A stretch of 56,443 nucleotides of DNA from Dimorphilus gyrociliatus (GCA_904063045.1 CAJFCJ010000106.1:60472-116914), one strand, 5' to 3'. Positions 1,133 through 56,443 are shown, counted from the first letter of the stretch. A program made the numbers and translations. The notes: generated from the sequence alone by a model not told the origin.

Positions 1133-4100
1133 TTAAGTTTCAAACGGTTTATTTTGAAAAAATACAAGTTTAAAATTTTTATAATTTGATTTTAAATTCC
1201 CAGATTTAAACATTAATTTTTTTGATGAAAATGATTTTTGTAATATTTTTCTTAATGTATCTCCAAAGGCAAAGATATCTTGCATTTCAACTCTGTCTTC
1301 AAATCTGTAGATTCTATTTATCAATAATGAACACTGTTTTTTTTCTTTCTCTAAATCCTTTTGTAAGAGAAAATTGATAAAAATTATTTGAGAGATGGAA
1401 AATGTCCCCAAATGTTTGGATTTATTAAAAGCCTACAAAGTTTTTGTGTAGGTTTAAATCTTTTTCATAAGTGATATAAATCCGCTAAATACAATTAAAA
1501 TTAGCTGCTGTATTCATCAAAACCACTTTTTTTAAACTTAAAAAATGTTGCCTTCAAATATATCATTTAGGGACATTCTATTTGAATTCTGAAAACTCAC
1601 ATTACATATTATTGTGTTAAATGATATATTTCCTTTGCATGATAAATGGAAATTATGACAAAAAGCAATTGCTGTTATTATAGATTTTGATATAATCAAA
1701 ATATTGTTAACATTGAATATATATGGATTAGTTTTAAAAAGATCAAGAATATTTGGAGATGTATGATCAAATGAAAGAAAATAACTGTGAATACCATTTA
1801 CAAATTTACAATCTGTTTTTAATTATTAATACAAAATTGAAAAATTTGAAATGAAAAATATTTTACTTCTTTCCAGATATTCTTCTTTTAGGGATTGTAG
1901 TTTTTTCTCACTGTGAATTTTAGTTATAAAATAATTCTTGTTGTTATTAAGCCTATATTTCTATGACAAACATTGTTTGTTTTTTTATCCTTTTAGAATT
2001 TTTCAAATGGTTCCTGTAATCATTTAAAGTGTACAAAAATGGATTTATAACTGAATTGATTGGTAGATTAAAAATAACAAGTGCAGTATAAATTTCATTT
2101 GAAACAATTAATTCAAAAAAAGTTGAGTATATTCCTGTAAAAAGAAGATAAATTAGCAAAAAAGAACAATATAAAGAAGACATTTAAAATACCTAAAAGT
2201 GAAATTGGCAGCCAACATAAAATGTTTGTTACAACAACTAAAAATGATCTAATTTTAAATCTTGTTTGTTGTTGTTTAAACACATTTTTTTTAACAAGAC
2301 TTTTAGATTCTAAAGTTCTTTTCCATATTTTATAATACAATAGAAAAATTACAAAACATACCAATCCAACAAAACATCCAAAAAATATAAATGAATAGAA
2401 CCATCCTTCCTTCTTAATACTAGAGATATGTAATGTAAAACAAACTGAACTTTTAGAGTAGTAATCCTAGTTAATATTTCATAAAAAATATTATTTTATT
2501 GTTTTTTTTTTAGAATGATAAATTATTTTAATACATTATATATGAACAGTGGAAGAATGGAAGAAACAAGTGACCAGAGCCAAATGAAGATTAAAAAACT
2601 CACTAATGAGTAAGATTTAAAAACTTTTTTCAATGGATAAATAATTACTTGAAATCTTTCAATTGTTATAAATAATATGCTCAATGTAGATAATTGAATT
2701 GAAAAACTTGCAAAACATCCAATTAATGAACATATTGAACTATTTCTCCATTTAAAATCATTTTCCACATATTGTCCTCTAAACATTATATCAACTATTC
2801 CAATAGAAATGAAATATATTGAAATATTCAAATCTGCACATATCAGACTTAGAAGAAGGAAATTTTTTTGCTTTTTTGAAAACATAACATAAAATATCAA
2901 TGAAGAAAAATTTTCAATAAATGATGTCACATTTATAATCCATAAAATTGCACGTCTTAACTTTGATTGTAACAAATCAGCACATGAATTAAATAATGAT
3001 TTGTTGGGTTTACAATGTTTAATTCGATTTGAATATTTCCATGAAAAACAACATAATTCAAAATATTCACTTGATAAGTTTACTAACTTTCTTAAATGTT
3101 GAATAATAAATTTACCATTTTTCATGTTAATCAAAGATTTTTCCAGTAAAAAAGATTTCAATGACACTAAATGTGAAAAACAGTTGTGTTCAATCTGTTT
3201 AATTTGACATTTGCTCATGTCAAGGTATACAAGTTTTCTACAGTTTCTAAAAAGGTCAAATGTTAATGTAGATAAATTAGTTTTAGATAGAATAAGCTTT
3301 CTTAAATTTGAAAAAAGGGAAAATGAAAAATCTCCCAAAATAATAACATTGTCATAAAGATTTAAAATTTGAATTTTAGTAAAAGAAGTTCTTGGTAATT
3401 TATTTAAATGTATTAAGTTATTTTTTTGAATAGTCAAAAAGAATACATTGGGAAAAGTATTTGCAATTTCTTTGATATTTATACTACTTATAGTTATTGT
3501 TAAATAAGTTACAGTTACATATTGATGTTTAAAAAACTTTTTAAAATTTAATTTGAATCTTGAAATATTCACATTCTTCCAAAAATAGATTTCACTGTTT
3601 ATCAACCAATTGGAAATTGTGTACTTGAAATTACAATTTAAATTATAGAAAGACTGACAAATACAATTTTTTGGACATTCTTTAAAACTGTTGCAGTACA
3701 GTTCATCACTTCCTTGAAGACAATCTACAATTCCATTGCATGTTTCTGAAAGGTCAATATAAAATTTCTCATTTCTACATTTAAAAAATCCTTTTGGTTG
3801 GAAAAATTCTGTGTTTTTTTTTTTATTCAATGATTATCTTTTGATATGAAAATAATTTATCAACTAACCACAATGGCTTTCATCATCATATTCAGGACAA
3901 TGAATAATGCCATCACAAACTTGTTTAATTGAAATACAATAAGTATTTGTCTTGCAGAGATATTCACCTTTGTTACACTTTTGTAGATGACAGTCATATA
4001 ATTGAAGATATGGATAATGAACTTTTGTCAGTAGATTTCCCATTGAGTCATATTTTACATGACAATTTTGTTTAAGACTTTCTAAGCCACTAATTTCATC

Positions 4101-7100
4101 ACATAATTCATTTGTGAATAGAGCTGGTCGTTTGTTAATGCAGTATTCTAGATCTTCATCACTTATATCATTACAGTCCTTTTGAAAATCACATACTTTT
4201 TCCATGGGAATACATTTGTTGTCACAAAGAAATAGATCTTTATTATTGCAGTCTATATTAAAGAAAAAGTGATAGTGACTTAAATGCAGATAAAAACTTT
4301 AAATAATCTTACACTTGTCAGCAGTATTTGAACAAATTTCATCAGTTGCATCAAAACAGTTTATTTCTCCATTGCAGTGTTGATTTTTGTCAATACACTG
4401 TTGATTTGTGCATCTTGAAATAAAAATCGCATTGTATTTTTCACAATAAAAAAAAATGTTTAAGATTTATTTCTTTTTCTTATAAAACCTTTGATTTGAA
4501 GGACAATACTGCCAATCTAAAATCAAATTAAAAGTATTATTTAAGAGAGATTTTCAACTGCTCAATTTCTTACAGCAGTCTTTTTCATCTTCCATATTTG
4601 GACAATCAGGAATATGATCACAAACTTGTTTATAATTTATATATTGTTCATTATTACAATAGAAATTATTGTAATTAGAGCAATTTTCTTCATCTTCCCC
4701 TGAGAAACAATCACTTTTACCATCACATAGATTGATGGTATTAATAAAGATTGAATCCTTTAAGCATAAAAATATGTTTTTTAAAAGAGTATCATTTGAT
4801 GAAGGTACAATTGATAATTGTTCATTATGTAATTGTTTACTGTAGTATTTGCTTTCAACTTTAAAAATAGAATAAAGTTTTGGTATTACAAAAATGTTTA
4901 TTTTATACAAAAGTAACTTGAATAGTACAAATGTATTCTTTGTAAGCCTAGCATTTGTTCAATAAAACAATGATATCTAATTAAATTTTTTCATATTGTC
5001 AGAAGGAAAATCTCTCTTAAATTTTCTGTAAAATATCTAAGAACATTGTCCTATCCAGTCACTTTTGTACAGTATAGTATGACATTTTTTTTAAGTATAT
5101 GAAATCATTTACTTGCTAAATCTATACATGAAATTGTTGAAATTTGAACAGTTTGGCATTCTGCTGATTCAGTTTCGTACGGTTTAGAAGTTAAGCGCTT
5201 TGTTTCAGAGATGCTTTGAAGGTCGTATATGTTAAATGATTGCAATGTTCTTGAATTTTTGTATATGAAACAAAGGGATAACTTTGAAGGTGAATTCAGT
5301 TTTGGATCTAGTTGAAAAAATGCCTGACATACATCCATATAACTGAAAAATTGCATTTGATCAATAACTTGAATGGTGAAAAGAGAATTTGCTTATTATA
5401 TACTTGTAATAATTATTCATAAATGATGTAAAATCATAGGGTATATTATTTAAGTGAACAGTTGTTGTTCTATTTCTTCTGTCTTTTATCAATTTCATTC
5501 CTATTAATGAAAATATTTATAAAACAACCAAATAGATAAAAATTGGTACAAGAATTATATTCATACTTCCTGGTAACATAAACTTGTATTTAAGCATTGC
5601 AGGTGAACTTCCAAATTGACTTATTAAGGATTGTAATCTTATATTTTCCAATAACCATAAGAACTCATAACTTTCAAATGATATATATGTCATAGTACTA
5701 TTTCTTTCATTGCAAAACTTTTCATTGTTTTGAATTGATAGTTTTCTTTTAAGTTTTAAATATAGATAACATAACTTTTTGTAGAGAAATGTATCTTCAT
5801 TCTGGCAAACTATAGTTTGTGAAGAAATAGTGATTTTTCTATCTGTAATAATGCCTAGCTAGCATTACCTACTCCATTATTGCTACATTCAATAAATAAA
5901 GCTGATCTTCCAAAAAATTCCACTGTTTCCTTTATTTTGGTATGAAATATTGCAATTAGATCATCATTCATTATTTCGAAAGAACAAGGTGACTGTTCAA
6001 AGGATTTTGAACAATACATTTTTGCATTATAGAACTTTGTAATAGTAATATTATTTAAAAAACCATAAAGGCTTCCATACTTAAAACCAAAAGTACGGCA
6101 TAAATTCATTATATTTTTAAATTTGAAAGATTCAAAAGTTGGTTGAAACCAACTATTTTTATAAAATATTTGTAAATTCCCAATAAAATGAGTATAATTA
6201 TGATTTTGTCCAAAGTTTAGAATATTCCCCATGGTGTTGAAAAGTCTATATTGAAATTCTGTAGCACAATGTTCAGATAATTATTTATTAATTAATTGCA
6301 TTTTTCCCTACTAAGGGAACCAAACCTGTAAAGTTATTTTTCTCACATGTTAGGTATAATACAAAGGCATTATGAAGTTTAAAATATAGTTTACAAGATG
6401 AGATGCCATTCAAAGTCATATTACATTCACTTATGTAGTATAGGTGTTTTAGCTTAATCTGATATTCCTTGTCATGGCATAGCTCTTCAGCAAACTTTGA
6501 TGTTATTTATTCTTTACTTAAGACTATATATATATATTTTGATAAGATGAATAATCACCACATCTCCCAGATTATACACTTGAAATATTGGATTGAGAAT
6601 TCCATTTTGATTCATACATACAGACATGGCAAGTTTTTCCCAATTCTGATTAAAATCAACCAATAATGGTGTAATACCCAATGTTTTTGAATTTATTACA
6701 AATGGTGTAGTAGAAGTTATAATATTCTTAAAAAATGTATTTTTCAAATAATTTGGTGCTCTTTCTATTATATAATCTATACAATTGAACAGAGAAATTA
6801 CAAAGAATTATCACTATTTTTTATCACTAATTTTTTTTCTTGAAGTTTATTACCCATTATCTCACTAACACTGCATGTAAAGTCTGTATAATTATTGAAA
6901 ATATATTGATTTCTTCTATTTTTTCTTTTCAAACCAACAGTATAATTATTGAAAATAACAGCAAAGTAATCTTTGGCACCATCAATTTGTTTAGTAGAAT
7001 AGAATTGTAATTTGGGACACCATTTATATTTTAGTTCTTCTTTCTCCAGATATAATTTAAATGATTTCTTTTGTTTTCTCAAATAGACAAATTGTTGTTC

Positions 7101-9074: not shown

Positions 9075-10157
9075 TCATTTTTTCAGAGAGCTATTTGTTT
9101 GAATACGTTTTTTACAACCAATCAATTTAAATAATTCATTCCTAAATGTTTCGCCGCATGCACAGTAAAATATAAAATTGATCACGTGATTCAAGCTATT
9201 AAGTATTAATAGAAATTCATAAGTTAGGATTACAATTTCAGATTGATAAAGGTGTGGTGCAAATTTTAAAACATGAATATTAATGACAGAAACTGGAAAT
9301 GTTGTGATAATAAATGATGTTGATAGTAGAAGAGTTAAGGTAGTTAGTTTCTTTGTTGTTCTTTTAAGTTTAGTATCATTAGTATGAGTAGTTTTTTCAG
9401 TCAAATCGTCCATTTTTTTAGTATGAACTTTCAATTTATAAAGAATAAGTATATTTAATATTCCCATACAAATTGATGGAAATATTGAATAAATCACATT
9501 GTAATTGAGGTAAAAGTAATTGTCAAGAAAATCATTGACACCTGGATCATCTGGAGCGCAATGAACTACTGTTGGAGTATATCTAGTAGGTGTTTCTTTC
9601 GCAACCAATTTGACTAAATTCATTCCAATTCCATAGATAATTATACATGCAACTACTATGTTACAAACTTTGAGTGTAGACCAAACTTTTGCCTTTGTAG
9701 GAAATGCAATACACAAAAATCTATCAAAAGTTATAGCTATAAGTGTTAAAGATGAAATTTGAGCGAAAGAAAAGTAAATGAATCTATAAATTTTACAATC
9801 AACCCAAAGAGCAACTGTCTCATCAACAATTCTTACATTTAGAAAATATACACCTCTAATCACATTACCAACTATTACCATGAGATCAGCAAATGTGACA
9901 ATTAGCATGTACCTGAAAAAGGTAGTTTTCCATAGACTACCTTTTATTATTGTAATTATTGATATCAGATTAAATGGAATTCCAAAAATAATACCAACTG
10001 ATAAATAAATTATTGGTGTTATTAGTATTGCAAATTTCTCTATAATAGTAAAATTATAAATAGTGCTGTTACTGTTTTTGGTGTCAAAATCATTAGGATC
10101 CAATGTCACATTCATCATCTTTGTCTTTCTTCTTGTACAAGTATTTTTCATGTACAA
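9075..10157 (-). CDS. Intronless class A peptide-type GPCR (FMRFamide/TRH-receptor-like)
   Basis: 360-aa ORF with 7 hydrophobic segments, N-glycosylation sites at the N terminus, TM2 ADL, TM3 DRF, TM6 FP, TM7 NHVINFIFY. Confidence 0.92.
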   Translation of the reverse strand: MYMKNTCTRRKTKMMNVTLDPNDFDTKNSNSTIYNFTIIEKFAILITPIIYLSVGIIFGIPFNLISIITIIKGSLWKTTFFRYMLIVTFADLMVIVGNVIRGVYFLNVRIVDETVALWVDCKIYRFIYFSFAQISSLTLIAITFDRFLCIAFPTKAKVWSTLKVCNIVVACIIIYGIGMNLVKLVAKETPTRYTPTVVHCAPDDPGVNDFLDNYFYLNYNVIYSIFPSICMGILNILILYKLKVHTKKMDDLTEKTTHTNDTKLKRTTKKLTTLTLLLSTSFIITTFPVSVINIHVLKFAPHLYQSEIVILTYEFLLILNSLNHVINFIFYCACGETFRNELFKLIGCKKRIQTNSSLKK

Positions 10158-10546: not shown

Positions 10547-11518
10547 TTATACTGTACTCTGAACAGTACGTTTAATAGTAGATACTTTACTGTTTGTAGC
10601 TGAATGGACACTATTAGATTGATTGTATTTAGGAAAGAAGGACTTTATTAGATTTTTCCTAAATGAAACTTGAAATATAATATAAAAAAAAATATTTGTA
10701 GAATTAGTAATGAAAAAAAAATAATGTATAAAAATATTTGATGGTAATACACCAACAAATTCAAATGAAATTGTAAACCAACCCACTAAATAAAAGGAGG
10801 TAACACCAAAAAGCATTGTTACAGTTCTAAAAGTTTTACCAAGACTTTCAGATTCTAAAAATCTCTTTCCATTTTTATCAATTCTAACCTTCTTCTTCAT
10901 ATTTCTTAAATAGATAACTCTATAAATTAGGCCATAGATTGAATACAATAGTATCACAAGTCCAACATAGAGGAATATTATATAAAATTTTTGCAGTTCA
11001 AATAATCTACTAGGTGTAGGAAAACAATTCTTCAATATTCGACCATCATATCTCTTACCAATCGAAATTTCATGTGATGAAGCATTAAGTGAACCACCAA
11101 ACAAACCAACCAAAACAATTACTATTAACATAATTTTTATATGTTTTTCATTCAATTTTTTCAATGGTTTACAAATTGCAAACCATCTTTCAACTGCAAT
11201 GAATATAAAGATAAGACTTGAAATAACTATGATGAACTGGTAGAAAAATTTAGTTATCTTACAAATTGGAACATTTTCAATCAAACCAATTTGTAAGACA
11301 ACACTATAAGGACCGCAAAGTCCACATATTAAAATATCAGCAATTGCCATCAGTTTAATAAAAATATCATTTGGGTTAAAGGTTTTTTTGAACTCGTAGA
11401 AAAATAAGATAAAGAAATTTGAAGGTACACCAACTGCAAAGATAATTGACATATAGATAAAAAATGGAGTAAAAAATTTAAAATCAATGTTATCAGTTGA
11501 AACAGTATAATTCTCCAT
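10547..11518 (-). CDS. Intronless class A GPCR (orphan neuropeptide-receptor-like)
   Basis: 323-aa ORF, 7 TM, TM2 MAIADIL, TM3 ERW.AIC.P, TM7 NSTNIFFY. Confidence 0.9.
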   Translation of the reverse strand: MENYTVSTDNIDFKFFTPFFIYMSIIFAVGVPSNFFILFFYEFKKTFNPNDIFIKLMAIADILICGLCGPYSVVLQIGLIENVPICKITKFFYQFIIVISSLIFIFIAVERWFAICKPLKKLNEKHIKIMLIVIVLVGLFGGSLNASSHEISIGKRYDGRILKNCFPTPSRLFELQKFYIIFLYVGLVILLYSIYGLIYRVIYLRNMKKKVRIDKNGKRFLESESLGKTFRTVTMLFGVTSFYLVGWFTISFEFVGVLPSNIFIHYFFFITNSTNIFFYIIFQVSFRKNLIKSFFPKYNQSNSVHSATNSKVSTIKRTVQSTV

Positions 11519-11654
11519 TTGAAATTACCTGGTGTGTGCTACAGGTTGTTTAATGATATTGAACTTGTCACTCAATATAAGGCAAGAATTCTAAATTAAT
11601 TATGATCTTCCAGTCCAATTGAATTGGAAATTTAATTAAATGAAATTGAAAAAA

Positions 11655-15019: not shown

Positions 15020-16110
15020 CATACAGAATCTTATCACTCTCACCATTAACTTTCTTGTAGTGTTCCGACTTTTATCAATTGTATTGAAATTGAAGATTAG
15101 ACTATAATAGATAATTTGATAGCCAAGGATAATTACACAACAACTGCTTGAGCAAAAGTAGCACTAGCATAAAAGCAGTATGGCACCCAGCATTGTCTTG
15201 CTGGAAGATGTACTGCCTCCCCATTTTTGCTGATATATCTTCTATTACAGGCAGAACATCTTCCACAGTAAAACTGCTATAGTTGTCAGCATTCAGTTTC
15301 TTATTTATCCTCCATATCTCAAATATTCCATCCAATGTAATGAGTCCCCAAACCATTACTCCACCTCTATACATATTTTTCGTCACCCTGAATGCTTTTT
15401 CACCATGATTAGTCCATGTTCTGAAGTCATCAGGGTCACTCAGTGAGTATCTAGCCTAGTCAGTGAAAATTACTTTAGACCAGTCTAGATTATCACTCAT
15501 CATCTTAAGGCAATATGTTTTTCTTCTTTTGCAATTGTTGGATGTGAGGTCAGGTCTTTGTCTTACTCATTTATACTTGAAATTTTGTCTTTTCAGTTCT
15601 CTCTGTGCTTACATCTACTTTTAATTCCTGGAAATTTTTCCCACTATCACCCTTTCCTTATTTCTTTTCAATTTCTTTATTATTCTTTTCATCCTGCCTA
15701 TGTCTCTCTCTCTCTCTGTAAGTCTCTTTGGATGACCCCTATTCTCCTGTTCTGGTGGATTGTATTGTAGAATATTGCTAACTGATGTTGGTGCCATCCC
15801 CAAAACCCTTGCTGTTGCTCTTACTTTTCCTGTTTCCTTATATTTCCTTAATACAAGATCCCTAATGTCTTTACTCCACGTCATAGTTAAATAAATACAA
15901 GAAAAATTAACTAATATAATTAAAATTGATAATAATAGATAAACTTAACTTGGAGAATTGAATAAGTCAAAAAAATTTCAGTTTACAACATTTTTTTAAA
16001 TGACAAACCAGAAATCAAGTGTCTGTACCAATAATTATGAAGCGCAGCCAAATAAAGAAAAACTTCATGAAAATTTGGTAAAATATTTAGCTAATAATAT
16101 TCCCGAATAT
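15020..16110 (-). mobile_element. Degenerate Tc1-family element, older copy
   Basis: ORFs 15621-15884 (MTWSKDIRDLV...HTH) and 15102-15386 (GGVMVWG...YIFQQDNAGCH) parallel the 28743-30358 element. Subterminal cagccaaataaagaaaaa motif at ~16046. Confidence 0.88.
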
Positions 16111-20916: not shown

Positions 20917-21111
20917 TAAGTGATTGAATGAGCGAATAGATGAAGAATGTTTTGTTAAATCAATTGCCCTGTCTGTATTTAAACAATTATTTTTGTCACA
21001 AATTAATTTTAAATTTAATTTTTTATTTTTTAAATTTTAAATAAATTGCTTTTTTTGTAGTTTTATTAATTTTTATTTTAAAACAAAAAACAATTTCATA
21101 ATTAAAATAAT

Positions 21112-21693
21112 TCAATCCTTTTTCATATTATATGTTTGAATATGATAGGATTGCAATTGTTTCTTTAGTAGGCAACCAAGATCTTTAACATTCCCTTTAG
21201 GCTCAAATTCATAGTTTATTATTGCTAAATGATCAACTATCATTTCTCTACTCTGAAAAGGTGGAAAATAATTATATCTTTTACATCTATATCAATGTCA
21301 ATCCTCACCATTTTCAATATGGAGGTTCTATCAAGATTTCCCTTATAAAAACAATTAAAATTGTGTAGAGAGTCAATGAAATTAACATAGTTTTGCATAT
21401 CATAAAATATTGAATAAAGATTTTTCTTATTGGTAGGGTGAAAAACATTAGATTGGAATTGTTGAAGAAAGAGTATAGCTGGAGATAGAAGTGTATTTGT
21501 TAAATATTTTAAGAGATAGAAGGAAGAGAGAGTGGAACACACAAAAAAAAATGGGTGTACTTATGAAATTATATCGATAATTAATTACCTGGATAGATAC
21601 TCTGCTCAAAAAATTCCCTTTTGAATATATTCCTATCAAAAGAATATAATACAATTTTTATTAATATTAAACTATTTGAGAGTGTGGGAGAGC

Positions 21694-21725
<32 letters not shown>

Positions 21726-23595
21726 AACAGACATATACATAAACAGACAGATGGGCAAGCACAAAATCAAATAAGACTCACATCATTTATATATAAAAAA
21801 AAGTTATCTACCTTTCATTATCTTCCTTCTGTTTCATTCTTTCAAGTACAGTTCGGAATGTAACATAAAATGGAAAAGAGTAGGAAACCAATGGTAATAA
21901 AAATAACGTCCACCATTCACTCAGTAGCCTGAAATTGTTGGATGAAGATTCTAGGCTTAACCCTAACAAATTTTCAAATTAAAAGAAAGGCAGTTTTTGA
22001 ATATTTATTTCATTTACACAAAAAAGAGATAAAGGTTAAAAATGTTCTAATATGAGTAGGGAGACAATACATCCAATGATGTGATCCTCTTTTAAGGAAA
22101 TTAATAATGCAAAGAATAATTGAAAAGATTGAAATAATTGGAACATAAACATAAAAAATAGCTTTTATTGAAGTATGTGTCACTTGATTCAACAACAGAA
22201 TTGAACAGGTATTGAATTTTTTCATTTTCTTTTAGTTTTGTGAAATTGAAGTTTTTTTTTACTTTTTCAAATTAAACATCACCTACCTGTGAAAAATTGA
22301 CTAGAAAACCAACTAGGCCCGATACAATGAATGATAAGGAATAGATAAATTCCCAAAATGAAGTTTTGTTACGAATTTTATTAAAGATTTTACAACTGAT
22401 TCTCAATTCAGTGACAAAAATATTCAAGATAGAATTTTGAATGAAAATAACAAAGAGAAGATTTGAAAGAGAACACAAGTTATCTTCATTGATATTTGTT
22501 AATTTTTCAGAAATGATAAAATTATAAAAGATATTTGAAATTAGAAATGTTAATATAAAATAATCATTGAGTTTTCTTGTAATAAACATAATTGATAATC
22601 CAAAAGTGAATTTAATCAAAAAAATCAATTCAAAAAAGAGATAAATGATTGATAAAATGATAAGTGAAATTATTGAAAAATAAAGTAAATTTGATGGAAA
22701 TATTTTTAAACAGTGAAATAATATTCTCATTTCAAAATTACAAGAAAAATTTGATGGTGAAAATTTCTTTAAATAGCAACAGAATTTAAAAAATGATAGA
22801 TTAGCTTTCTCAATTGAAATTAATGATTTAAAGTAAAAAGTTTTATGAGAGAAATGAAGATTTATTGATAGAATATTCAACTTTTTCAAAGGTTTCAATG
22901 TATTTGGTGATATTTTTATAAAACTGTTGGTCATCTTTATTATCAATTCTCTTAATTCAATCAGACCATCAAAAGCTTTGGAAGGAATTTTTTTAAATTT
23001 ATTAAATGATAGATTTAATATTAATAAATGTTGAAAATCTTTAAACATTGAATTTGAAAGTTTTTCTATTTCATTACTACTCAAATTTAATATTTGTAAA
23101 ATTTGTTTATTTTCAATTTTTAAACTAGAAAATTCAACAAGAAAATTACAACTTAAATCTAAAATTACTAGATTTTTAAAGTTTGAAAAGAAATTTTCAA
23201 CTGTTGAAAAATTTCTTGTATATTTTAAACTAAGATAAGAAGCATAATGATAGGATGACATTTCATGATCATCTTTTCTAGCATAAGATATATTATATAA
23301 TTCAATCATTTTGAAATATTTTAAAAGTTCTAAATTGCCATTAATCCATATTTTACATTCAATTTTATTTGAATATTCACACAAACATTCTTCTCTTTCT
23401 TTTACTTTTGGACAATTAAATATTTTACAATTTAATTCATCTCTGCCATCTTCGCAATTGTAAATTCCATCACAAACTTGAGATATTTTTATAAAATGTT
23501 TTCCTTTATTTTTACATTTGAAAAATCCTCTAGGTAGGAAATTGTCTAATAAAAGCAAATATGTAGATTATAGTATGGGAAAAGAAGGTGTGAGT

Positions 23596-28742: not shown

Positions 28743-30358
28743 CCCGGACACCGTAAATTTTGATAGGCCAAAGATTAAAAATCTTTTTCTTGATCAAAAA
28801 AGATTTTTTTTTCTATTTTTTAGCAATGAAATATTAGGCGAAACTTGGATCTACATAGAAATTTCTATCAAATAGTATTTAGATAAGTTTTTACATAATT
28901 TTTTTCATTTTTATATAGTGTATATTTTCATAAGTTTTTTTCTTATTTGGCTGTGAGTCACATTATTCTGGACAATGGTCTGGGGACTAATATTTTTACT
29001 ACTTCTGTATTTGGTGACCTTCTTTCTCAATGCACGTAATGATCCTACCCCCCATTCCAGCATACAGATTTGGTAGCAAGTCAGGATTTTTGTTTATAAG
29101 TTTGTAGGAACAGTTTTTAATTTTCTCCCATAGTTCATCTTCTGATGTGAATTGTGCCCCATTGTAAACCAAATTTTTGGTCAGGTGCCACACATTTTCT
29201 ATTGGGCTAAGATCAGGGCTCTTAGCTGGCCAATCAATTGAATGTATGCCGTTCATCCTGAATGCCCTGCTGGTAACTCTTGCAGTATGGCACCCAGCAT
29301 TATCCTGCTGGAAGATATAATCTCTCCCCATTTTATCTGAGATTTCTTCTATAACTGGGAGAACATCTTCGACCACAAATGTAGCATAGTTTTGGGCATT
29401 CAATCTTTTGCTTACTCTCCATACCTCAAACACACCATCCGAGGTTATCAGTCCCCAAACCATTACTCCACCTCTGCCCATATTTTTTGTTAATCTCATC
29501 TCTTTTACCCTGTCATTTGTCCAGGTCCTGAAGTTGTCAGGACCACTCAATGAAACCTTGCCTCATCCGTAAATATGACTCTTGACCAATCTAAGTTATC
29601 TCGAATAGTTTTTAAACAATACTGTTTCCTTCTTTTGCAGTCATTGCTTGTGAGATCAACTCTTTGTCGAATTCGTTTATAACAAAAATTTTGCAATTTC
29701 AACTCTCTCTGAATTGTCTTCAGGCCTACATCTACCTCTAATTCATTTAAAATCTTCCTAGCAGTTACCCTTTCCTTGTTTCTTTTAAGTCTCTTCACAA
29801 TCCTATTCATTCTTGCTACATCTCTTTCTGTGAGTCTCTTTGGACGACCCCTTGTTTGGGTGGCTTATACCTTAAAATGTTGCTAACTGTAGATGATGCC
29901 ATTCCCAAAGCCCTTGCAGTTTCCCTTACTTTCCCCAATTCTTCATATTTCTGGATTACCAGGTTCCTAACCTCTTTTCCCCATGCCATAATGAAATAAA
30001 TGATATAAAAATTAACTAAAGTAGGTAAAATAGATAATAAGTAATCAACTTAACTTGGAAATTAATTTTGTTGAAAAAAATATCAGTTTAAGATGTCTAT
30101 TTAAACGCAAAACTGGATGTAATCCGGATGTACGGTTAATTTGGACTTACAGCCAAATAAAGAAAAAAACAATAAAAATTAATAAAAAAATTTTGCTAAT
30201 AATTTTCACAAATATGATAATTTTCTATAATTTTTTTCAGTATTACATAAATATAACTCTTTCTTCATGGAAATTTAGACAAAAAAACCAATTGAAAACA
30301 AAGATAACATTTCTGGGGTGTTTTCAAAATTGGCCTATCAAAATTTATAGTGTCCGAG
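28743..30358 (-). mobile_element. Full-length Tc1/Tc3-like DD34E element (left-arm copy)
   Basis: ~27-bp TIRs (c[c/t]cggacac...aaattttgataggcc) with TA on both sides. Transposase motifs FTDEARF, QQDNA, WPAKSPDLSPIENVW, with 34 residues between the second D and E. Two frameshifts. Confidence 0.95.
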
Positions 30359-32226: not shown

Positions 32227-33025
32227 TCATTTTCTTCGATATTGTCTATAATTTCGGAAGGGGAGGGGTTTTCTATAATTTTGAGGACGTTTTCTGTCCT
32301 TTTGGAACCATTTTCTGTCATCTTCAAACTTCTTGCGATAACTAGTGAAGGTTCTTAGAGTTGTTCTTGTCCCATTCTGAAGGTTGAGGTTTGATCCAGA
32401 AAGACTAAACCTTGGAAAGTCTAGATGGACTGGAAAATTAATAAATTTAAGGTTACAGAGCTTTAAACCAAGAGAATTTAGGGGACATTCCCAAATTTTG
32501 AATATTCCTCCATCCAGCTTTATATCTTTAAATAGAATAAATCTTTCATTTTGGCAGCCATGTTTTAAAATATATTCAATCTCAGTAGTAAGTTTCTCAT
32601 TGAAATCACAAAAACGTAAATCTAGTTTCTTCAAAGTGTCCAATGACATTTGAAGTCCTTCACAAATATTCTTCACTCCACCACCCAATTCTTTATTCTC
32701 GCATAGAATAATGGATTCAATATGGGAGCAATGCTGTAGCAAATTTCCAAAATCTGTCTACTTTGTTTTTCATTTAAATTACAAGAATGAAAAGTTAAAT
32801 TTTCAAAGTGCTTGATGACATTCGAAGTCCTCGACAAATATCCGCTTTTCCTTTACCTATTTTTCTATTGCCAGTTAGATTTGTTTTTTCAACCATTTTA
32901 TAATTGCTCATCAAATCTAGGAGTTGAAATAGGTCTCTATCAATCAAAGGGCAAGTTTTCAAAAAGATACATTCACGAGATCAGGAATCTATTCCCTAAC
33001 ATCTCTTTCTGCTCAACCTTTCGTT
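32227..33025 (-). pseudogene. RI/NLR-type LRR fragment (left-arm mirror of 34640-35438)
   Basis: Identical 171-aa ORF to 34923-35438. Confidence 0.7.
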
Positions 33026-33067
33026 GAGTTCAATTTTCAAACTGTAGCCGTAAGTAGTGAATATGGG

Positions 33068-33718
33068 TTGGAAACATCCTGGTCAGGCTTTATGTATGAA
33101 GGAAACAATGTATTCTTTGTTGGTAGAAACTCTCCTTTTTTAGAAACAGGATACCAAATACCATTTACTCAAATTGTTGCACTGAGGGGTGCTGCTCTAA
33201 TCATGCAGAATAGAGAGATTCAAGTCTTTTCAACTGGATGGTATTATGTTAATTTTGGCATTGGATTTTTAGGTAGATTATCTTGTTTGGTAAGCCTCGT
33301 GAAAAATGTAGAATCTAGATCTTTTGAAAGATCTATAGCAAAAAACCACATAGATTCAATAGCCACTCAAGCATCTAGAGGAATTATTGTTAAATTGAAT
33401 GAAAATGACAGGATATCATTAAAATTGCATGCTGGTGCATCAACATCAAGTAAAATGTCTACTTACATATCTGGATTTAAATTAAATTTAACTGTGGAAA
33501 GGCCAGCATTCTATGCCTATAGAACTGACAATGTGCTAGGATCATCAAGGGTAAAGATAGCCTATGATGCATGTGTCATTGACACTAATTCTGGTTGGAA
33601 TTCCTCAGAAAATGTTTTAACTAGTGGATTTAATTCAATGCTTGAAAAGAAATTGATATTTGAAAAGCACCATCAAAAGTTCTCTAAAAACTTTTATTTT
33701 GATGTATTATCCACTTAA
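33068..33718 (+). CDS. Truncated mirror copy of the tandem C1q gene, running into spacer sequence
   Basis: Identical to 33977-34597 up to NSSENVLT (33621), then an unrelated tail SGFNSMLEKK... Confidence 0.6.
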   Translation: METSWSGFMYEGNNVFFVGRNSPFLETGYQIPFTQIVALRGAALIMQNREIQVFSTGWYYVNFGIGFLGRLSCLVSLVKNVESRSFERSIAKNHIDSIATQASRGIIVKLNENDRISLKLHAGASTSSKMSTYISGFKLNLTVERPAFYAYRTDNVLGSSRVKIAYDACVIDTNSGWNSSENVLTSGFNSMLEKKLIFEKHHQKFSKNFYFDVLST

Positions 33719-33776
33719 GCTTTGGTAAAAGACAGAATAAATAATCAACTCCACTGGTATTTAAAATACAATTTAA

Positions 33777-34614
33777 TCATGCAACAGTACATAATGCCAA
33801 ATTATAAAGGAGAAATGTAAAACAAAGCCAATGATGTAAATTAGTACTTGTCTCTACCGATACTCTATCATTAACTTGCAATTTTAATAAACCTGCCCTG
33901 CTCATTGTTTCATAGCCTGGTCTTGGTCTTGCTCTTCTCATACCCAATCTTTGTTCATTGTTCACCATAATATATATTATTGATTGTGAATTTGGCCATG
34001 TGCCAACAGACACATCAATATAATATAAACCGGAAATTGCAACGTTAAAACATTTTCTGAGGAATTCCAACCAGAATTAGTGTCAATGACACATGCATCA
34101 TAGGCTATCTTTACCCTTGATGATCCTAGCACATTGTCAGTTCTATAGGCATAGAATGCTGGCCTTTCCACAGTTAAATTTAATTTAAATCCAGATATGT
34201 AAGTAGACATTTTACTTGATGTTGATGCACCAGCATGCAATTTTAATGATATCCTGTCATTTTCATTCAATTTAACAATAATTCCTCTAGATGCTTGAGT
34301 GGCTATTGAATCTATGTGGTTTTTTGCTATAGATCTTTCAAAAGATCTAGATTCTACATTTTTCACGAGGCTTACCAAACAAGATAATCTACCTAAAAAT
34401 CCAATGCCAAAATTAACATAATACCATCCAGTTGAAAAGACTTGAATCTCTCTATTCTGCATGATTAGAGCAGCACCCCTCAGTGCAACAATTTGAGTAA
34501 ATGGTATTTGGTATCCTGTTTCTAAAAAAGGAGAGTTTCTACCAACAAAGAATACATTGTTTCCTTCATACATAAAGCCTGACCAGGATGTTTCCAACCC
34601 ATATTCACTACTTA
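33777..34614 (-). CDS. Tandem (multi-)C1q domain gene, 3' portion; one frameshift
   Basis: End of one C1q domain (ETSWSGF), a full domain (F.V...GWYYVNF...ASRGIIVKLNENDRI...TYISGF) and a third (PAFYAY...YD..VIDTNSGWN...; AISGLYYIDV...LKLQVNDRVSV). The third domain needs one extra T in the run near 34047. Confidence 0.8.
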
Positions 34615-34639
34615 CGGCTACAGTTTGAAAATTGAACTC

Positions 34640-35438
34640 AACGAAAGGTTGAGCAGAAAGAGATGTTAGGGAATAGATTCCTGATCTCGTGAATGTATCT
34701 TTTTGAAAACTTGCCCTTTGATTGATAGAGACCTATTTCAACTCCTAGATTTGATGAGCAATTATAAAATGGTTGAAAAAACAAATCTAACTGGCAATAG
34801 AAAAATAGGTAAAGGAAAAGCGGATATTTGTCGAGGACTTCGAATGTCATCAAGCACTTTGAAAATTTAACTTTTCATTCTTGTAATTTAAATGAAAAAC
34901 AAAGTAGACAGATTTTGGAAATTTGCTACAGCATTGCTCCCATATTGAATCCATTATTCTATGCGAGAATAAAGAATTGGGTGGTGGAGTGAAGAATATT
35001 TGTGAAGGACTTCAAATGTCATTGGACACTTTGAAGAAACTAGATTTACGTTTTTGTGATTTCAATGAGAAACTTACTACTGAGATTGAATATATTTTAA
35101 AACATGGCTGCCAAAATGAAAGATTTATTCTATTTAAAGATATAAAGCTGGATGGAGGAATATTCAAAATTTGGGAATGTCCCCTAAATTCTCTTGGTTT
35201 AAAGCTCTGTAACCTTAAATTTATTAATTTTCCAGTCCATCTAGACTTTCCAAGGTTTAGTCTTTCTGGATCAAACCTCAACCTTCAGAATGGGACAAGA
35301 ACAACTCTAAGAACCTTCACTAGTTATCGCAAGAAGTTTGAAGATGACAGAAAATGGTTCCAAAAGGACAGAAAACGTCCTCAAAATTATAGAAAACCCC
35401 TCCCCTTCCGAAATTATAGACAATATCGAAGAAAATGA
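34640..35438 (+). pseudogene. RI/NLR-type LRR fragment
   Basis: Repeating unit L..C..I..I.L..N..LG.G...IC.GL..S..TLKKLDL..C. The upstream repeat (NLTGNRKIGKG.ADICRGLRMSSSTLK) is frameshifted. Confidence 0.75.
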
Positions 35439-35715: not shown

Positions 35716-36232
35716 TGCTTATAACTTTCTTACTTTTTTATATTTCTTGGTCACAAGATCTCTCATATCTTTGTTGAATAAATACAATAAATATGAACAA
35801 ATATTATTAAAATATAATTAATTTATAAAAATAGAACGCAAAGAATTCAAATCAGCTGCTAGAAAAAAGTTTTGTGGCAGCAAATAATGTTGTTTATCAA
35901 CCTGAATGTCATGCTTTCAGCTATTATAGAAAACCTCTGTGTCAGCTGCTATACTACTACTATTACTCTGTTGCATATAGAGCAGAACAAAGTTGCAAAA
36001 GTAGGACAATTATGCTTGTTTATTAATATTTAACAAACTACAGATGGCGCTTTAACATGAGATGGTGCTTCCTCCCTGCCATATTTCGTTAAGATTACCT
36101 TCATTTTGATTTACAAAGCCGGTAAATATTGAACTTGTGTCTTTGTAATTTTAATTTTTATCAAAATTACATGATTTTAGTACAATGTTATATCTATCAT
36201 TACTTAGATTGATGGTGTTCAAACAGAAAGGT

Positions 36233-36892
36233 ATGAAAGTAGTGATTACAGGATCATCTGGCTTAATGGGAAAAGGAGCATTGCTGCAATGCGTCAAAGA
36301 CAGTAGAGTGGAAGAAGTGTTAATAATCAACCGAAAGAGCATTGGTTTTAACCATCCGAAGGTGAAGGAAATTTTATTGACGGATATGTTCGAATTGGAT
36401 TCCATTAAGGAGGAGTTGAAGGGCTACGATGCTTGCTTCTTTTCAATTGGTATTACTGCTTTTCGGGCAAAGGAAGAATATTATCACAAAATGACGTTTG
36501 GTCTTACAAAATTGTTTGCCGACGTTCTCTGGCAGCAAAATCCGGATCTGACGTTTTTATATATATCAGCAGAGGGCAGTGATCCTACAGAAAGTAGTGG
36601 GTCTTTTTGGAAAGATGCTAGGGGGAAAACTGAAAATTATATCATTCATTCTGGGAAAAAAGGATATGTTTTTCGTTTAGCAGTTATAAAACCGATAGGA
36701 GAGGTTAGTTCCAGAACATACGGAGCTGCAGAACCCGTTGTAAAAGTACTCTACCCAGTCTTAAGATGCCTTGCTCCAAATAAGGTAACCACCACCGAAA
36801 ATATAGGAAAATCCTTCTTAAACATTGTCGAAAAGGGAAATGATATAAAGTTGCTTCAATCAAGAGCAATAAATGCGCTGGCAGCTCAATAA
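36233..36892 (+). CDS. Intronless NAD(P)-dependent epimerase/dehydratase (atypical SDR), bacterial-like
   Basis: 219 aa from MKVVITGSSGLMG (Rossmann GxxGxxG). Also VLIINRK...HPKVKEI, GYDACFFSIG, NPDLTF.YISAEG.D, GKTEN. No intron; less AT-rich than flanks. Confidence 0.88.
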   Translation: MKVVITGSSGLMGKGALLQCVKDSRVEEVLIINRKSIGFNHPKVKEILLTDMFELDSIKEELKGYDACFFSIGITAFRAKEEYYHKMTFGLTKLFADVLWQQNPDLTFLYISAEGSDPTESSGSFWKDARGKTENYIIHSGKKGYVFRLAVIKPIGEVSSRTYGAAEPVVKVLYPVLRCLAPNKVTTTENIGKSFLNIVEKGNDIKLLQSRAINALAAQ

Positions 36893-37315: not shown

Positions 37316-38932
37316 CTCGGACACTATAAATTTTGATAGGCCAATTTTGAAAACACCCCAGAAATGTTATCTTTGTTTTCAATTGGTTTTTTTGTCTAAA
37401 TTTCCATGAAGAAAGAGTTATATTTATGTAATACTGAAAAAAATTATAGAAAATTATCATATTGTGAAAATTATTAGCAAAATTTTTTTATTAATTTTTA
37501 TTGTTTTTTTCTTTATTTGGCTGTAAGTCCAAATTAACCGTACATCCGGATTACATCCAGTTTTGCGTTTAAATAGACATCTTAAACTGATATTTTTTTC
37601 AACAAAATTAATTTTCCAAGTTAAGTTGATTACTTATTATCTATTTTACCTACTTTAGTTAATTTTTATATCATTTATTTCATTATGGCATGGGGAAAAG
37701 AGGTTAGGAACCTGGTAATCCAGAAATATGAAGAATTGGGGAAAGTAAGGGAAACTGCAAGGGCTTTGGGAATGGCATCATCTACAGTTAGCAACATTTT
37801 AAGGTATAAGCCACCCAAACAAGGGGTCGTCCAAAGAGACTCACAGAAAGAGATGTAGCAAGAATGAATAGGATTGTGAAGAGACTTAAAAGAAACAAGG
37901 AAAGGGTAACTGCTAGGAAGATTTTAAATGAATTAGAGGTAGATGTAGGCCTGAAGACAATTCAGAGAGAGTTGAAATTGCAAAATTTTTGTTATAAACG
38001 AATTCGACAAAGAGTTGATCTCACAAGCAATGACTGCAAAAGAAGGAAACAGTATTGTTTAAAAACTATTCGAGATAACTTAGATTGGTCAAGAGTCATA
38101 TTTACGGATGAGGCAAGGTTTTCATTGAGTGGTCCTGACAACTTCAGGACCTGGACAAATGACAGGGTAAAAGAGATGAGATTAACAAAAAATATGGGCA
38201 GAGGTGGAGTAATGGTTTGGGACTGATAACCTCGGATGGTGTGTTTGAGGTATGGAGAGTAAGCAAAAGATTGAATGCCCAAAACTATGCTACATTTGTG
38301 GTCGAAGATGTTCTCCCAGTTATAGAAGAAATCTCAGATAAAATGGGGAGAGATTATATCTTCCAGCAGGATAATGCTGGGTGCCATACTGCAAGAGTTA
38401 CCAGCAGGGCATTCAGGATGAACGGCATACATTCAATTGATTGGCCAGCTAAGAGCCCTGATCTTAGCCCAATAGAAAATGTGTGGCACCTGACCAAAAA
38501 TTTGGTTTACAATGGGGCACAATTCACATCAGAAGATGAACTATGGGAGAAAATTAAAAACTGTTCCTACAAACTTATAAACAAAAATCCTGACTTGCTA
38601 CCAAATCTGTATGCTGGAATGGGGGGTAGGATCATTACGTGCATTGAGAAAGAAGGTCACCAAATACAGAAGTAGTAAAAATATTAGTCCCCAGACCATT
38701 GTCCAGAATAATGTGACTCACAGCCAAATAAGAAAAAAACTTATGAAAATATACACTATATAAAAATGAAAAAAATTATGTAAAAACTTATCTAAATACT
38801 ATTTGATAGAAATTTCTATGTAGATCCAAGTTTCGCCTAATATTTCATTGCTAAAAAATAGAAAAAAAAATCTTTTTTGATCAAGAAAAAGATTTTTAAT
38901 CTTTGGCCTATCAAAATTTACGGTGTCCGCGG
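37316..38932 (+). mobile_element. Full-length Tc1/Tc3-like DD34E element (right-arm copy)
   Basis: TA-flanked TIRs; ORFs 37864-38226 and 38217-38675; mirror of 28743-30358. Confidence 0.95.
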
Positions 38933-43306: not shown

Positions 43307-44248
43307 ATGAATATATCTGAAATTGGTTTTCTTGTTTTAGCTGATCTAAATAAGTTTCAAGAAACTGCTTGCATGACACTACTTATGGTTATATTAATAT
43401 TTGGCTTGATACTCTCCAGTATAGTTATCTTCTTATTCCTAAAATTCGAATCTGTTAGAAAGTCATGTGGTTATTTTATATTTTGTACAATGATAAATCA
43501 TGTTTTATTAACATTGTGGTTTCTTTTCATTCATCTTAGTATGTTTCTTGGAAGTTTTAAAAGAATATCACCAGTTTTTTGTGTACTTATGATTACAATT
43601 CCTAGTTGTGCAAATATTCTAGCTCAGGTTAATTTGTTAGGCGTATTTGTAACAAGATATTTTTCCATACGTTTTCCATTTAAATTCAATTACTTTTGTT
43701 TTTCAAAGATACAGATTTTTGCAACAATTTGTGTAAATATATTTGGTCTTGTTGGTTCATCCATGCCTTTATTGTTACCAAGTGAGAAATCCCATATATG
43801 TTTTGGTTATATTTCAACAGAAAGCACCCCTTTGATTATATTACTCGTATTCTATTTTGGGCCAATTATACCATCTTTAATATTTCATTTTCTTTTGTTA
43901 AAGTTAGCTAGGAAGCATGCAAGATCTATGCAAATGCAGATGAATACTGTTCAATCTGTATCAGCATCTTCAAAAGCTACACTATATAAACTAATGTTAG
44001 TTTTCATATTATGGTCGTGTTATCTATATCTACTTAAGGATATTACTTTAAATCAATATGTAATATCTGGTAGAAAAGCAGTTTTGGTAGAGCTTTGTAT
44101 AATTTCTCCAACAGTTATTAATTCACTTATAGTACTCATAAGCAATTCTCATATAAAGCTAATCTTCAAGAACCATTTCAAGTTAAAGATATTTCCTAAA
44201 ACTGATAATAGCTTCTCCAATAATAGAAATAGAGCTATTTTAATGTGA
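43307..44248 (+). CDS. Intronless divergent class A-like 7TM receptor
   Basis: 313 aa, 7 hydrophobic segments, TM3 C...TRYFSIRFP (DRY variant), TM5 proline, no NPxxY. Confidence 0.8.
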   Translation: MNISEIGFLVLADLNKFQETACMTLLMVILIFGLILSSIVIFLFLKFESVRKSCGYFIFCTMINHVLLTLWFLFIHLSMFLGSFKRISPVFCVLMITIPSCANILAQVNLLGVFVTRYFSIRFPFKFNYFCFSKIQIFATICVNIFGLVGSSMPLLLPSEKSHICFGYISTESTPLIILLVFYFGPIIPSLIFHFLLLKLARKHARSMQMQMNTVQSVSASSKATLYKLMLVFILWSCYLYLLKDITLNQYVISGRKAVLVELCIISPTVINSLIVLISNSHIKLIFKNHFKLKIFPKTDNSFSNNRNRAILM

Positions 44249-55519: not shown

Positions 55520-56443
55520 TTATAGCAACAAAGTTGCTTGTTTTCTGAATACTTTTATATTTAAAAATAATTTCAATTTAAAAGTCTTTTTTTCAAATTC
55601 AAAATACATTGAATAAATTTACCAAAAGCGTAAATATCAATAATTTCAGTTGAATCAGAAAAAATTCTAAAACTTTTCCAACAAACATAGAATTTTCTTT
55701 TATTTTCCTAACAAAAAAGTAAGTTAGATTATAATAAAATATTTAAGAGAGGAAGAGAGCTGTTATCTTATTTTACATTATAAATAATATTTTCCAAGGA
55801 TAATAATCCTCTAAATGTTATGAAGTTTGAGTGTAAAAAGCAACAGGCAATCGAAACTGCTTTGATACATTGAAAGTAGTTCAGTTCTTTAAATAAATAA
55901 TTTTCAACTAAAGAAGATGATGATGCTTGATAGTTTTGTAAATAGCATATATGATAATCATCATAATCATTTAAACAGGAAATAACTTGTTTAAAGATAA
56001 ATAAATAGAAATTTGTACATATTTTATGTAGATATTTTATGGTCTACTTACATTTTTTTCTTGTCGAATATTCAATTTCCAGTTTATTCCTTTTCCTGTG
56101 ACAAGCAGCAACTTGAACATCAAGGCGGAGAAAAAAAGAAATCTTACCCTCTCTGTAATAGCTGATTTATTTGCTTATGTAATAGCTATAGATAGAAGAT
56201 AAGGTAAAGATTAATGGATTTAACACCGAATTATTTGGAATAAAAAATATAACAAGTAGAATTTTGACATTAGCTTGTACTGTAAGTTCTTTAAATGTTG
56301 AAAATATTACTGAAAACAGATGAAAAATGGTTGTGTTCAAGAATGAAATTTTAAAAACAACTCTTATTTAACCTAAAAGTGAAAGTGGAAACCAACAAAT
56401 TACATTTGTAGAAATGGTTAGAAGAAATGATTTTTTAATTCTT
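55520..56443 (-). CDS. 3' end of GRL101/LGR-like paralogue 6 (TM6-TM7 plus pseudokinase exons); gene continues beyond the window; absent from the ORF track
   Basis: TNVICWFPLSLL|VIFSTFKEL...FFIPNNSVLNPLIFTL with a 63-nt intron (56310-56372) at the same position as in paralogue 1. The TM7 frame stops at 56167. Downstream exons give FLHSNFITFRGLLSLENII (~55780-55840) and DIYAFG (55621-55638). Confidence 0.8.

Follow-up and report, generated by a model that had tools for sequence, protein, structure and literature searches.

A spliced C-terminal tail of probable protein-kinase origin on a divergent LDLa-LRR-seven-helix receptor of Dimorphilus gyrociliatus

Fusions between a GPCR (G protein–coupled receptor) and a kinase have been described in oomycetes and amoebozoans, as GPCR-bigrams (PMC6033456, PMC5784254). 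Others are the GPCR-TKL/K proteins of acanthoecid choanoflagellates and the GPCR-TK proteins of choanoflagellates and sponges (PMC12716839). Among animals, GPCR-kinase fusions are reported from sponges only; fusions of this kind are said to have originated repeatedly, and none has been characterised or has a known function (PMC12716839). On the receptor side, the nearest described proteins are GRL101 and the type-C LGRs, such as Lymnaea GRL101 and arthropod LGR5 (PMC8286064), which share with the receptors studied here LDLa repeats, LRRs, and a 7TM part of rhodopsin type. The GRL101 and LGR literature that was found makes no mention of a kinase-like tail.

The DNA analysed, called the window in what follows, is a stretch of 56,443 nucleotides from Dimorphilus gyrociliatus. 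It is AT-rich (24–34% GC), and its minus strand carries tandem paralogues of an LDLa-LRR-seven-helix receptor. Paralogues 1, 2, and 3 are referred to as P1, P2, and P3, and a further receptor at the window edge as the edge copy. An earlier note on this DNA had proposed that P3 runs in frame from its last membrane helix into a dead kinase resembling the kinase-homology domain (KHD) of receptor guanylyl cyclases. The exons of P3, and those of the corresponding tails in the other copies, are collected in Table 1.

In P3, LDLa repeats and LRRs stand ahead of the membrane part, which is the arrangement that marks LGR/GRL101 receptors, and upstream open reading frames hold more cysteine patterns of the LDLa kind. 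P1 carries the same two domains (Pfam LRR_8 33.1 bits, Ldl_recept_a 24.5 bits). The membrane part of P3 lacks the motifs of the rhodopsin family, reading ELR for DRY and SFPFY for NPxxY, and a search with Pfam 7tm_1 found no match in P3, nor in P0017, one of the relatives introduced below. P1 matches 7tm_1 at 37.2 bits (cut-off 30.5) and has the motifs ERF and NPFLY; the related locus L006 matches at 35.7 bits and has ERY and NPYIY.

Read without splicing, the TM7 exon of P3 ends in ...EDNER and meets a TAG just after 21812; both this stop and the donor at 21812 are as the earlier note had described them. The course of the transcript beyond this point was obtained from a public 384-nt contig of run X1, which aligns to 21176–21252, 21309–21478, and 21589–21638. 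It omits exactly 21253–21308 (56 nt) and 21479–21588 (110 nt), and both omitted parts read CT..AC on the plus strand, that is, GT..AG on the minus strand. Since two DNA runs, X2 and X3, cross the same parts uninterrupted, X1 represents spliced cDNA. The last two exons have the GT-AG borders and the frames that had been claimed for them, and their joints are seen in the contig.

Table 1. Features of the receptor and tail regions. Positions of P3, P1, and the edge copy are those of the window; a slash marks an exon border.
Locus	Feature	Position	Strand	Remarks
P3	Exon with last LDLa repeat, LRRs, TM1–4	22272–23558	-	Pfam LRR_8 43.8 bits; Ldl_recept_a 22.2 bits (cut-off 24.1)
P3	TM7 exon	21812–21990	-	Ends at phase-2 donor GAAAG/GTAGAT; upstream border putative; X1 contig covers 21812–21904
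P3	Intron 1	21633–21811	-	179 nt, GT..AG; contains (CT)n run
P3	Exon 2	21589–21632	-	Mini-exon of 44 nt, entered in phase 2 and left in phase 1; encodes R-NIFKREFFEQSIYP; in X1 contig, with joint 21478^21589
P3	Exon 3	21309–21478	-	170 nt; ...SLHNFNCFYKGNLDRTSILKM in the position of the alphaE/catalytic-loop remnant; both borders are joints in X1 contig
P3	Exon 4	21112–21252	-	141 nt including TGA stop; joint 21252^21309 in X1; contig cover down to 21176
P3	Poly(A) signals, two AATAAA	21062–21077	-	35–45 nt past stop codon
P1	Tail	1133–1972	-	Donor AT/GTTTGT at 1972/1971; 61-nt intron; exon 2 1867–1910 (44 nt); exon 3 1601–1812; exon 4 1133–1333
Edge copy	Tail	55573–56095	-	Exon 2 56052–56095 (44 nt); exon 3 55777–55985; exon 4 55573–55707; all open, mutually in frame
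L002	Tail	Exon 2 9447–9490; exon 3 9557–9744; exon 4 10022–10147		TM7 donor AG/GCAAGT (GC donor); exon 2 44 nt
L004	Tail	Exon 2 4957–5000; exon 3 5061–5236; exon 4 5298–5426		Exon 2 44 nt
L006	Tail	Exon 2 11036–11079; exon 3 11158–11369; exon 4 11422–11568		TM7 donor CT/GTTATT; exon 2 44 nt

The contig had been aligned to 21105–21692 of the window, and its TM7 side was placed through the letters left unaligned. It extends 87 letters past 21638, and the 30 unaligned letters that were compared fall on a single site in the window, 21818–21847, within the P3 TM7 exon. A modelled junction, 21812^21632, gives exactly the result of the aligner, namely a lone mismatch at 21635 followed by the same 30 unaligned letters, and it therefore fixes the limits of intron 1 and exon 2. 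The acceptor is the AG at 21634–21633, behind a T-rich tract. A non-canonical junction at 21638 was considered and rejected, as the canonical one accounts for the single mismatch. A mini first exon, ATGAT/GTGAGT (21782–21786), was likewise rejected as a separate start of the tail; the contig comes from the TM7 exon instead.

These results change the second exon, which the earlier note had drawn as 21589–21671 (83 nt) and which the contig and the modelled junction shorten to 21589–21632 (44 nt). With an exon of 44 nt, the LILIK stretch is intronic: the 39 nt (SLILIKIVLYSF) that had been counted as coding, and whose product LILIKIV had been taken as the equivalent of the kinase VAIK motif, are part of the intron. 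The frame is intact with either form of the exon because the two differ by 39 nt. The junction 21812/21671, which had been put forward for a check against transcript data, proved right on the donor side, where a splice from 21812 was found, and wrong on the acceptor side, which is 21632 rather than 21671.

The mRNA of P3 reads ...KQKEDNE-R-NIFKREFFEQSIYP-A-ILFLQQ... and gives a cytoplasmic tail of 117 residues that ends at a TGA at 21112–21114. The in-frame fusion of the P3 7TM gene to a three-exon tail, the central claim of the earlier note, is therefore real in RNA, as the contig and the junction 21812^21632 establish; this support consists of one contig (word depth 6) that comes from a run of unrecorded kind and covers 93 nt of the TM7 exon. 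The same note had stated that nothing cyclase-like follows the tail, and indeed the stop codon and the poly(A) signals come directly after it and no cyclase match was found. The open frames, too, are more than would be expected by chance. In each of the three tail exons, and in all three window copies, 0 stops are found only in the frame that is used, and up to 9 occur in the others. By our own arithmetic, the chance of 117 open codons is about 5e-5 at 29% GC, where some 8% of random codons are stops.

Two further observations concern the DNA runs over this region. In X2, a second contig covers window positions 21112–21268; it is 94% identical to the window over exon 4, differs from it beyond 21112, and has TGA in place of GGG, in frame, at codon 20. 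This variant may be another haplotype or a decaying or paralogous copy, and its in-frame TGA is a hint of relaxed constraint. In X3, over window positions 21254–21692, C is replaced by T at 41 places of the plus strand, the CpG at 21575 included. By this pattern, X3 appears to be a bisulfite library, and the locus to be unmethylated in it.

The same module was found behind other receptors of the window. P1 runs in frame from TM7 to its stop through canonical GT-AG introns; a reading that left its TM7 exon with GA as the sole possible donor was wrong, as a canonical donor exists (Table 1). In the edge copy, the intron GAGG/GTAAGA...CACAG/G is good, and the TM7 frame hits a TAA 22 nt ahead of the donor, off by one base; this break comes from either a recent frameshift or an error in the assembly. 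A common layout is seen in P1, P3, and the edge copy, with three exons after TM7, a 44-nt exon 2, and phases 2/1/0, and their tails are 16–24% identical (23% between P1 and the edge copy). P2 (14300–17729, minus strand) is a pseudogene: its LRR exon meets a stop at 17217, and its 7TM region is split into small ORFs. A tail module was looked for behind P2 and none was found; a Tc1/mariner remnant (15102–15884) follows instead.

The rest of the window holds several other elements. Between the large receptor genes lie three rhodopsin-like receptor ORFs without introns, at 9075–10157 (360 aa), 10547–11518 (323 aa), and 43307–44248 (313 aa). Two near-identical Tc1/mariner copies, at 28999–29990 and 37864–38675 (DDE_3, 44 bits), are accompanied by a third, degraded one, the remnant behind P2; these copies suggest recent transposon activity. 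An inverted duplication at 32227–35438 carries identical 171-aa ORFs at 32227–32742 (minus) and 34923–35438 (plus) and encloses two C1q-domain ORFs, 33068–33718 (plus) and 33977–34597 (minus), with 29 bits for Pfam C1q. At a limit of E 0.001, a Pfam search matched a 235-aa ORF at 36185–36892 to no family, and an Rfam scan of the window returned nothing.

Relatives were sought outside the window. An exhaustive protein search with a 428-aa ORF returned mostly giant LRR proteins, with P0017 and P0108 as useful relatives; P0151 and P0164 came from a word search that started from P0017. The contigs of the relatives are from Logan assemblies of SRR23372229/31 and ERR14224705, the latter a Tara Pacific reef long-read metagenome (PMC13083261). 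A search for homologous proteins with a 100-aa ORF over exon 3 gave nothing, one with a 435-aa ORF of P1 gave nothing at 1e-5, and a tblastn search with the tail, run on the window and on the relatives' loci, was dominated by noise, with no usable result. All three of the relatives' loci with enough downstream sequence (L002, L004, and L006), which come from a Logan assembly of a different sequencing run, have the tail module. L006 has three introns (50, 78, and 52 nt), across which the frame stays open from TM7 to the stop; together with P1, it provides canonical in-frame links between TM7 and tail. At 9310–9320 of L002, the TM7 exon seems to use a GC donor, AAAAG/GCAAGT, in the phase of the GT donor of P3. 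Six loci, three of the window (P1, P3, and the edge copy) and the three fetched ones (L002, L004, and L006), thus have the layout of a 44-nt exon 2 followed by exon 3 and by exon 4 as the last, with equal phases, and the window copies are about 30% identical to the fetched loci.

A receptor tree built on the LRR-to-TM parts of P1, P2, P3, L001, L002, L004, and L006 separated a clade A (P1, P2, L006) from a clade B (P3, L001, L002, L004) with support of 99/94; the tails of P1, the edge copy, and L006 were treated as clade-A tails. Because both clades carry the same layout, the tail module appears to be older than their split and to have been kept open in both, and we infer that it was attached to the receptors, with a common origin, before the two clades separated. 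A C-terminal motif, [LI][LI][KR]K[QS]LQx[YF]H, is shared by clade B and takes the form LLKKQLQSYH in exon 4 of P3, and an exon-4 profile made without L004 retrieves exon 4 of L004 at E 7e-9. Judged by sequence, clade B is divergent in both the receptor and the tail halves, and the tail of P3 is of the most eroded kind among the copies.

The question of what the tail derives from was addressed by several comparisons. By language-model features, exon 3 of P1 and exon 3 of the edge copy fell into clusters of protein-kinase fragments, at 0.96 (73 of 100 matches) and 0.95 (66 of 100 matches), respectively; shuffled proteins reach such scores in about 1 case in 100, and the two results are not fully independent because the sequences are homologous. 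The tail of P3 reached 0.82, in unnamed clusters. When a three-sequence exon-3 profile was compared with the PDB, the best match was STK33 (E 0.036), with the alignment falling on the last part of alphaE and on the HRD loop. A profile of three clade-A sequences gave nine PDB matches, eight of which were CDPK/CaMK kinase domains (E 0.2–1.7), in one register along the alphaD/E-to-HRD stretch, with no other part aligned. None of the kinase matches is significant alone (E 0.036–1.7). They were obtained solely through the profile of the sister clade of P3, and they are Ser/Thr kinases of the CaMK group, so that the proposed likeness to a guanylyl-cyclase KHD was not borne out; no features specific to guanylyl cyclases were found in the tails.

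The remaining comparisons gave no kinase. Pfam searches with single tail exons returned chance matches only (GeBP-like, Enhancer of rudimentary), exon-4 profiles matched no kinase in the PDB, and the clade-B exon-3 profile found there only weak matches to Enhancer of rudimentary. Neither of the clade-A and clade-B HMMs retrieves the other. In hhalign, the alignment of the two clades picked the expected alphaE/loop stretch with a score of 13.95, which is not above the controls (11.3 +/- 2.1 with shuffled columns). AlphaFold gave a pLDDT of 54 on a 70-residue exon-3 fragment.

The motifs of the tails were then compared with those of a kinase core. The Gly-loop, the VAIK Lys, the HRD Asp, and an intact DFG are absent from every tail; for the P3 tail, the lack of a Gly-loop and of DFG had already been remarked in the earlier note. 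A trace of DFG, an SDF remnant, occurs in L006 only. At the catalytic-loop position, P3 has YKGNLDRTS, P1 has CKGNISFN, and the edge copy has FRGLLSLEN. An altered catalytic loop together with a missing DFG would be compatible with a dead kinase and is no proof of one by itself. The motifs follow one another as an acidic, alphaC-like helix in the mini-exon (LKEEYLER), the helix end ..AIAFCHNF.., xKG/xRG with an N where HRD..N would stand (..CKGN..N), the SDF remnant (L006), and DI[FY]AFG, and this order agrees with a kinase core minus the activation segment. The alphaC-like stretch lies about 10–20 residues from TM7 in P1, P3, and L006, each tail terminates soon past the alphaF-like DI[FY]AFG, and tail lengths range from about 115 to 150 residues across the copies.

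A whole kinase fold is impossible at 117–151 residues. Since there is no room for the N-lobe strands and the tails end soon after the alphaF-like motif, the term stripped kinase core is nearer to the facts than pseudokinase fold. The dead kinase fold that had been proposed for P3 therefore survives in part: the catalytic residues are gone, as claimed, but the P3 tail gave no kinase signal in any test, and its 117 residues amount to at most an alphaC-to-alphaF remnant. Kinase descent appears highly probable for the clade-A tails. For the tail of P3 it is probable to a lesser degree, and the link there is made through the position of the tail, through its 44-nt exon and phases, which are identical to those of clade A, and through the receptors' sister relation.

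The best overall explanation, which we hold to be reasonably probable as a whole, joins these results as follows. P3 encodes a divergent LDLa-LRR-7TM receptor-like protein, and its mRNA continues from TM7 through a mini-exon and two further exons. Its tail would belong to a lineage-specific C-terminal module of these receptors, of presumed common origin and older than the split of the clades. Probably, the module descends from a protein kinase, namely from the alphaC-to-alphaF core of the catalytic domain, and the activation segment, the strands of the N-lobe, the far C-lobe, and all catalytic residues would have been lost. With every catalytic residue lost, the tail could not phosphorylate and, if working, may serve as a docking or regulatory piece that the receptor anchors at the membrane. 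In clade B, P3 included, the kinase remnant and the G-protein-coupling motifs DRY and NPxxY would both have eroded, the frame and the short C-terminal motif alone being kept.

Other explanations differ from this one in the origin of the tail, in its function, or in its connection to the receptor. The tail might be a real, conserved, lineage-specific domain with no kinship to kinases, its likeness to them arising from AT-rich composition and short hydrophobic and His motifs. The lack of any significant Pfam or PDB match, kinase E-values of 0.036–1.7 at best, the unrecognised tail of P3, and the confinement of the alignments to the alphaE/HRD stretch all speak for such a domain. It is nevertheless unlikely, as two paralogues of 23% identity both fall into kinase-fragment clusters at scores that shuffled proteins seldom reach, eight of the nine PDB matches are kinase domains in one register, and DI[FY]AFG stands at the distance expected for alphaF when the activation segment is missing. 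Somewhat less likely still is that P3 is a transcribed, decaying copy, in which receptor and tail are drifting with no role to play and the in-frame splice is a remnant. P3 has no 7tm_1 match though P1 and L006 do, its DRY and NPxxY positions read ELR and SFPFY, the kinase-like motifs are gone from its tail, and its RNA depth is low; X2 contains a near copy of its exon 4 that carries a TGA, and its neighbour P2 is clearly broken. Every exon of P3 that was inspected is open, however, and receptors of the clade-B type with open tails and a common C-terminal motif recur in L002 and L004 at about 30% receptor identity, which would be unexpected without selection.

A very improbable alternative is that the tail exons form a separate small gene and that the X1 contig is a read-through or chimeric artefact. 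The link in P3 does come from a single contig, and the TM7 frame of the edge copy is not joined to its tail. Against this, the junction is a canonical GT..AG that keeps the frame, the 44-nt exon lacks its own start codon and begins in phase 2, canonical in-frame links exist also in P1 and L006, and a k-mer assembler joins exons only if reads cross the junction. Collectively, the fusion of the receptor with its tail is real and conserved, and the origin of that tail from a kinase is unproven and likely. For annotation, this means that genes of this type run past the stop just after TM7 and that the 44-nt mini-exon must be modelled.

Compared to GRL101 and the type-C LGRs, P3 fails to match 7tm_1 and is without DRY and NPxxY, whereas P1 and L006 pass 7tm_1. 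The KHD of receptor guanylyl cyclases comprises about 250 residues in two full lobes; it sits in a receptor that crosses the membrane once, and a dimerisation helix and the cyclase come after it. The tail resembles it as a dead kinase-like module beside the membrane, with the catalytic-loop Asp replaced and an xGN after a YLH-like helix end. However, the bilobal domain, the single membrane pass, the dimerisation helix, and the cyclase are all missing here; the protein has seven helices, and the weak PDB matches are to the CaMK group. The nearest solved sequences are those of the CaMK-group Ser/Thr kinases (STK33 and the apicomplexan CDPKs), whose stretch from alphaD/alphaE to HRD aligns with clade-A exon 3 at E 0.036–1.7; in contrast to these enzymes, the tails have their catalytic residues replaced, and the rest does not align.

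Like the known GPCR-kinase fusions, the proteins studied here are seven-helix receptors with a module of putative kinase type on the cytoplasmic C-terminus. The GPCR-TK, GPCR-TKL/K, and GPCR-bigram proteins carry complete kinase domains, recognised by domain searches, on unrelated 7TM families. The 7TM part here is, in contrast, of a rhodopsin-class, LGR/GRL101-like kind with an LDLa and LRR ectodomain, and the module is cut at both ends, lacks catalytic residues, and gives no Pfam kinase match in any tail exon. If it is true that a hormone-receptor-like, rhodopsin-class family of the LGR/GRL101 kind bears a conserved kinase-derived tail, this would be a further independent case of GPCR-kinase fusion, and its copies, from better-kept to near-erased remnants, would form a natural series for asking what role a dead piece of a kinase has in a receptor and how receptor output changes. 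A bolder proposal, which we regard as tentative and rather doubtful, is that an animal lineage, independently of protists and sponges, built a large LGR-type family with a long-kept, kinase-derived pseudo-enzyme tail, retained even where the motifs for G-protein coupling were lost. If so, the tail, and not a G protein, would be the output device of these receptors.
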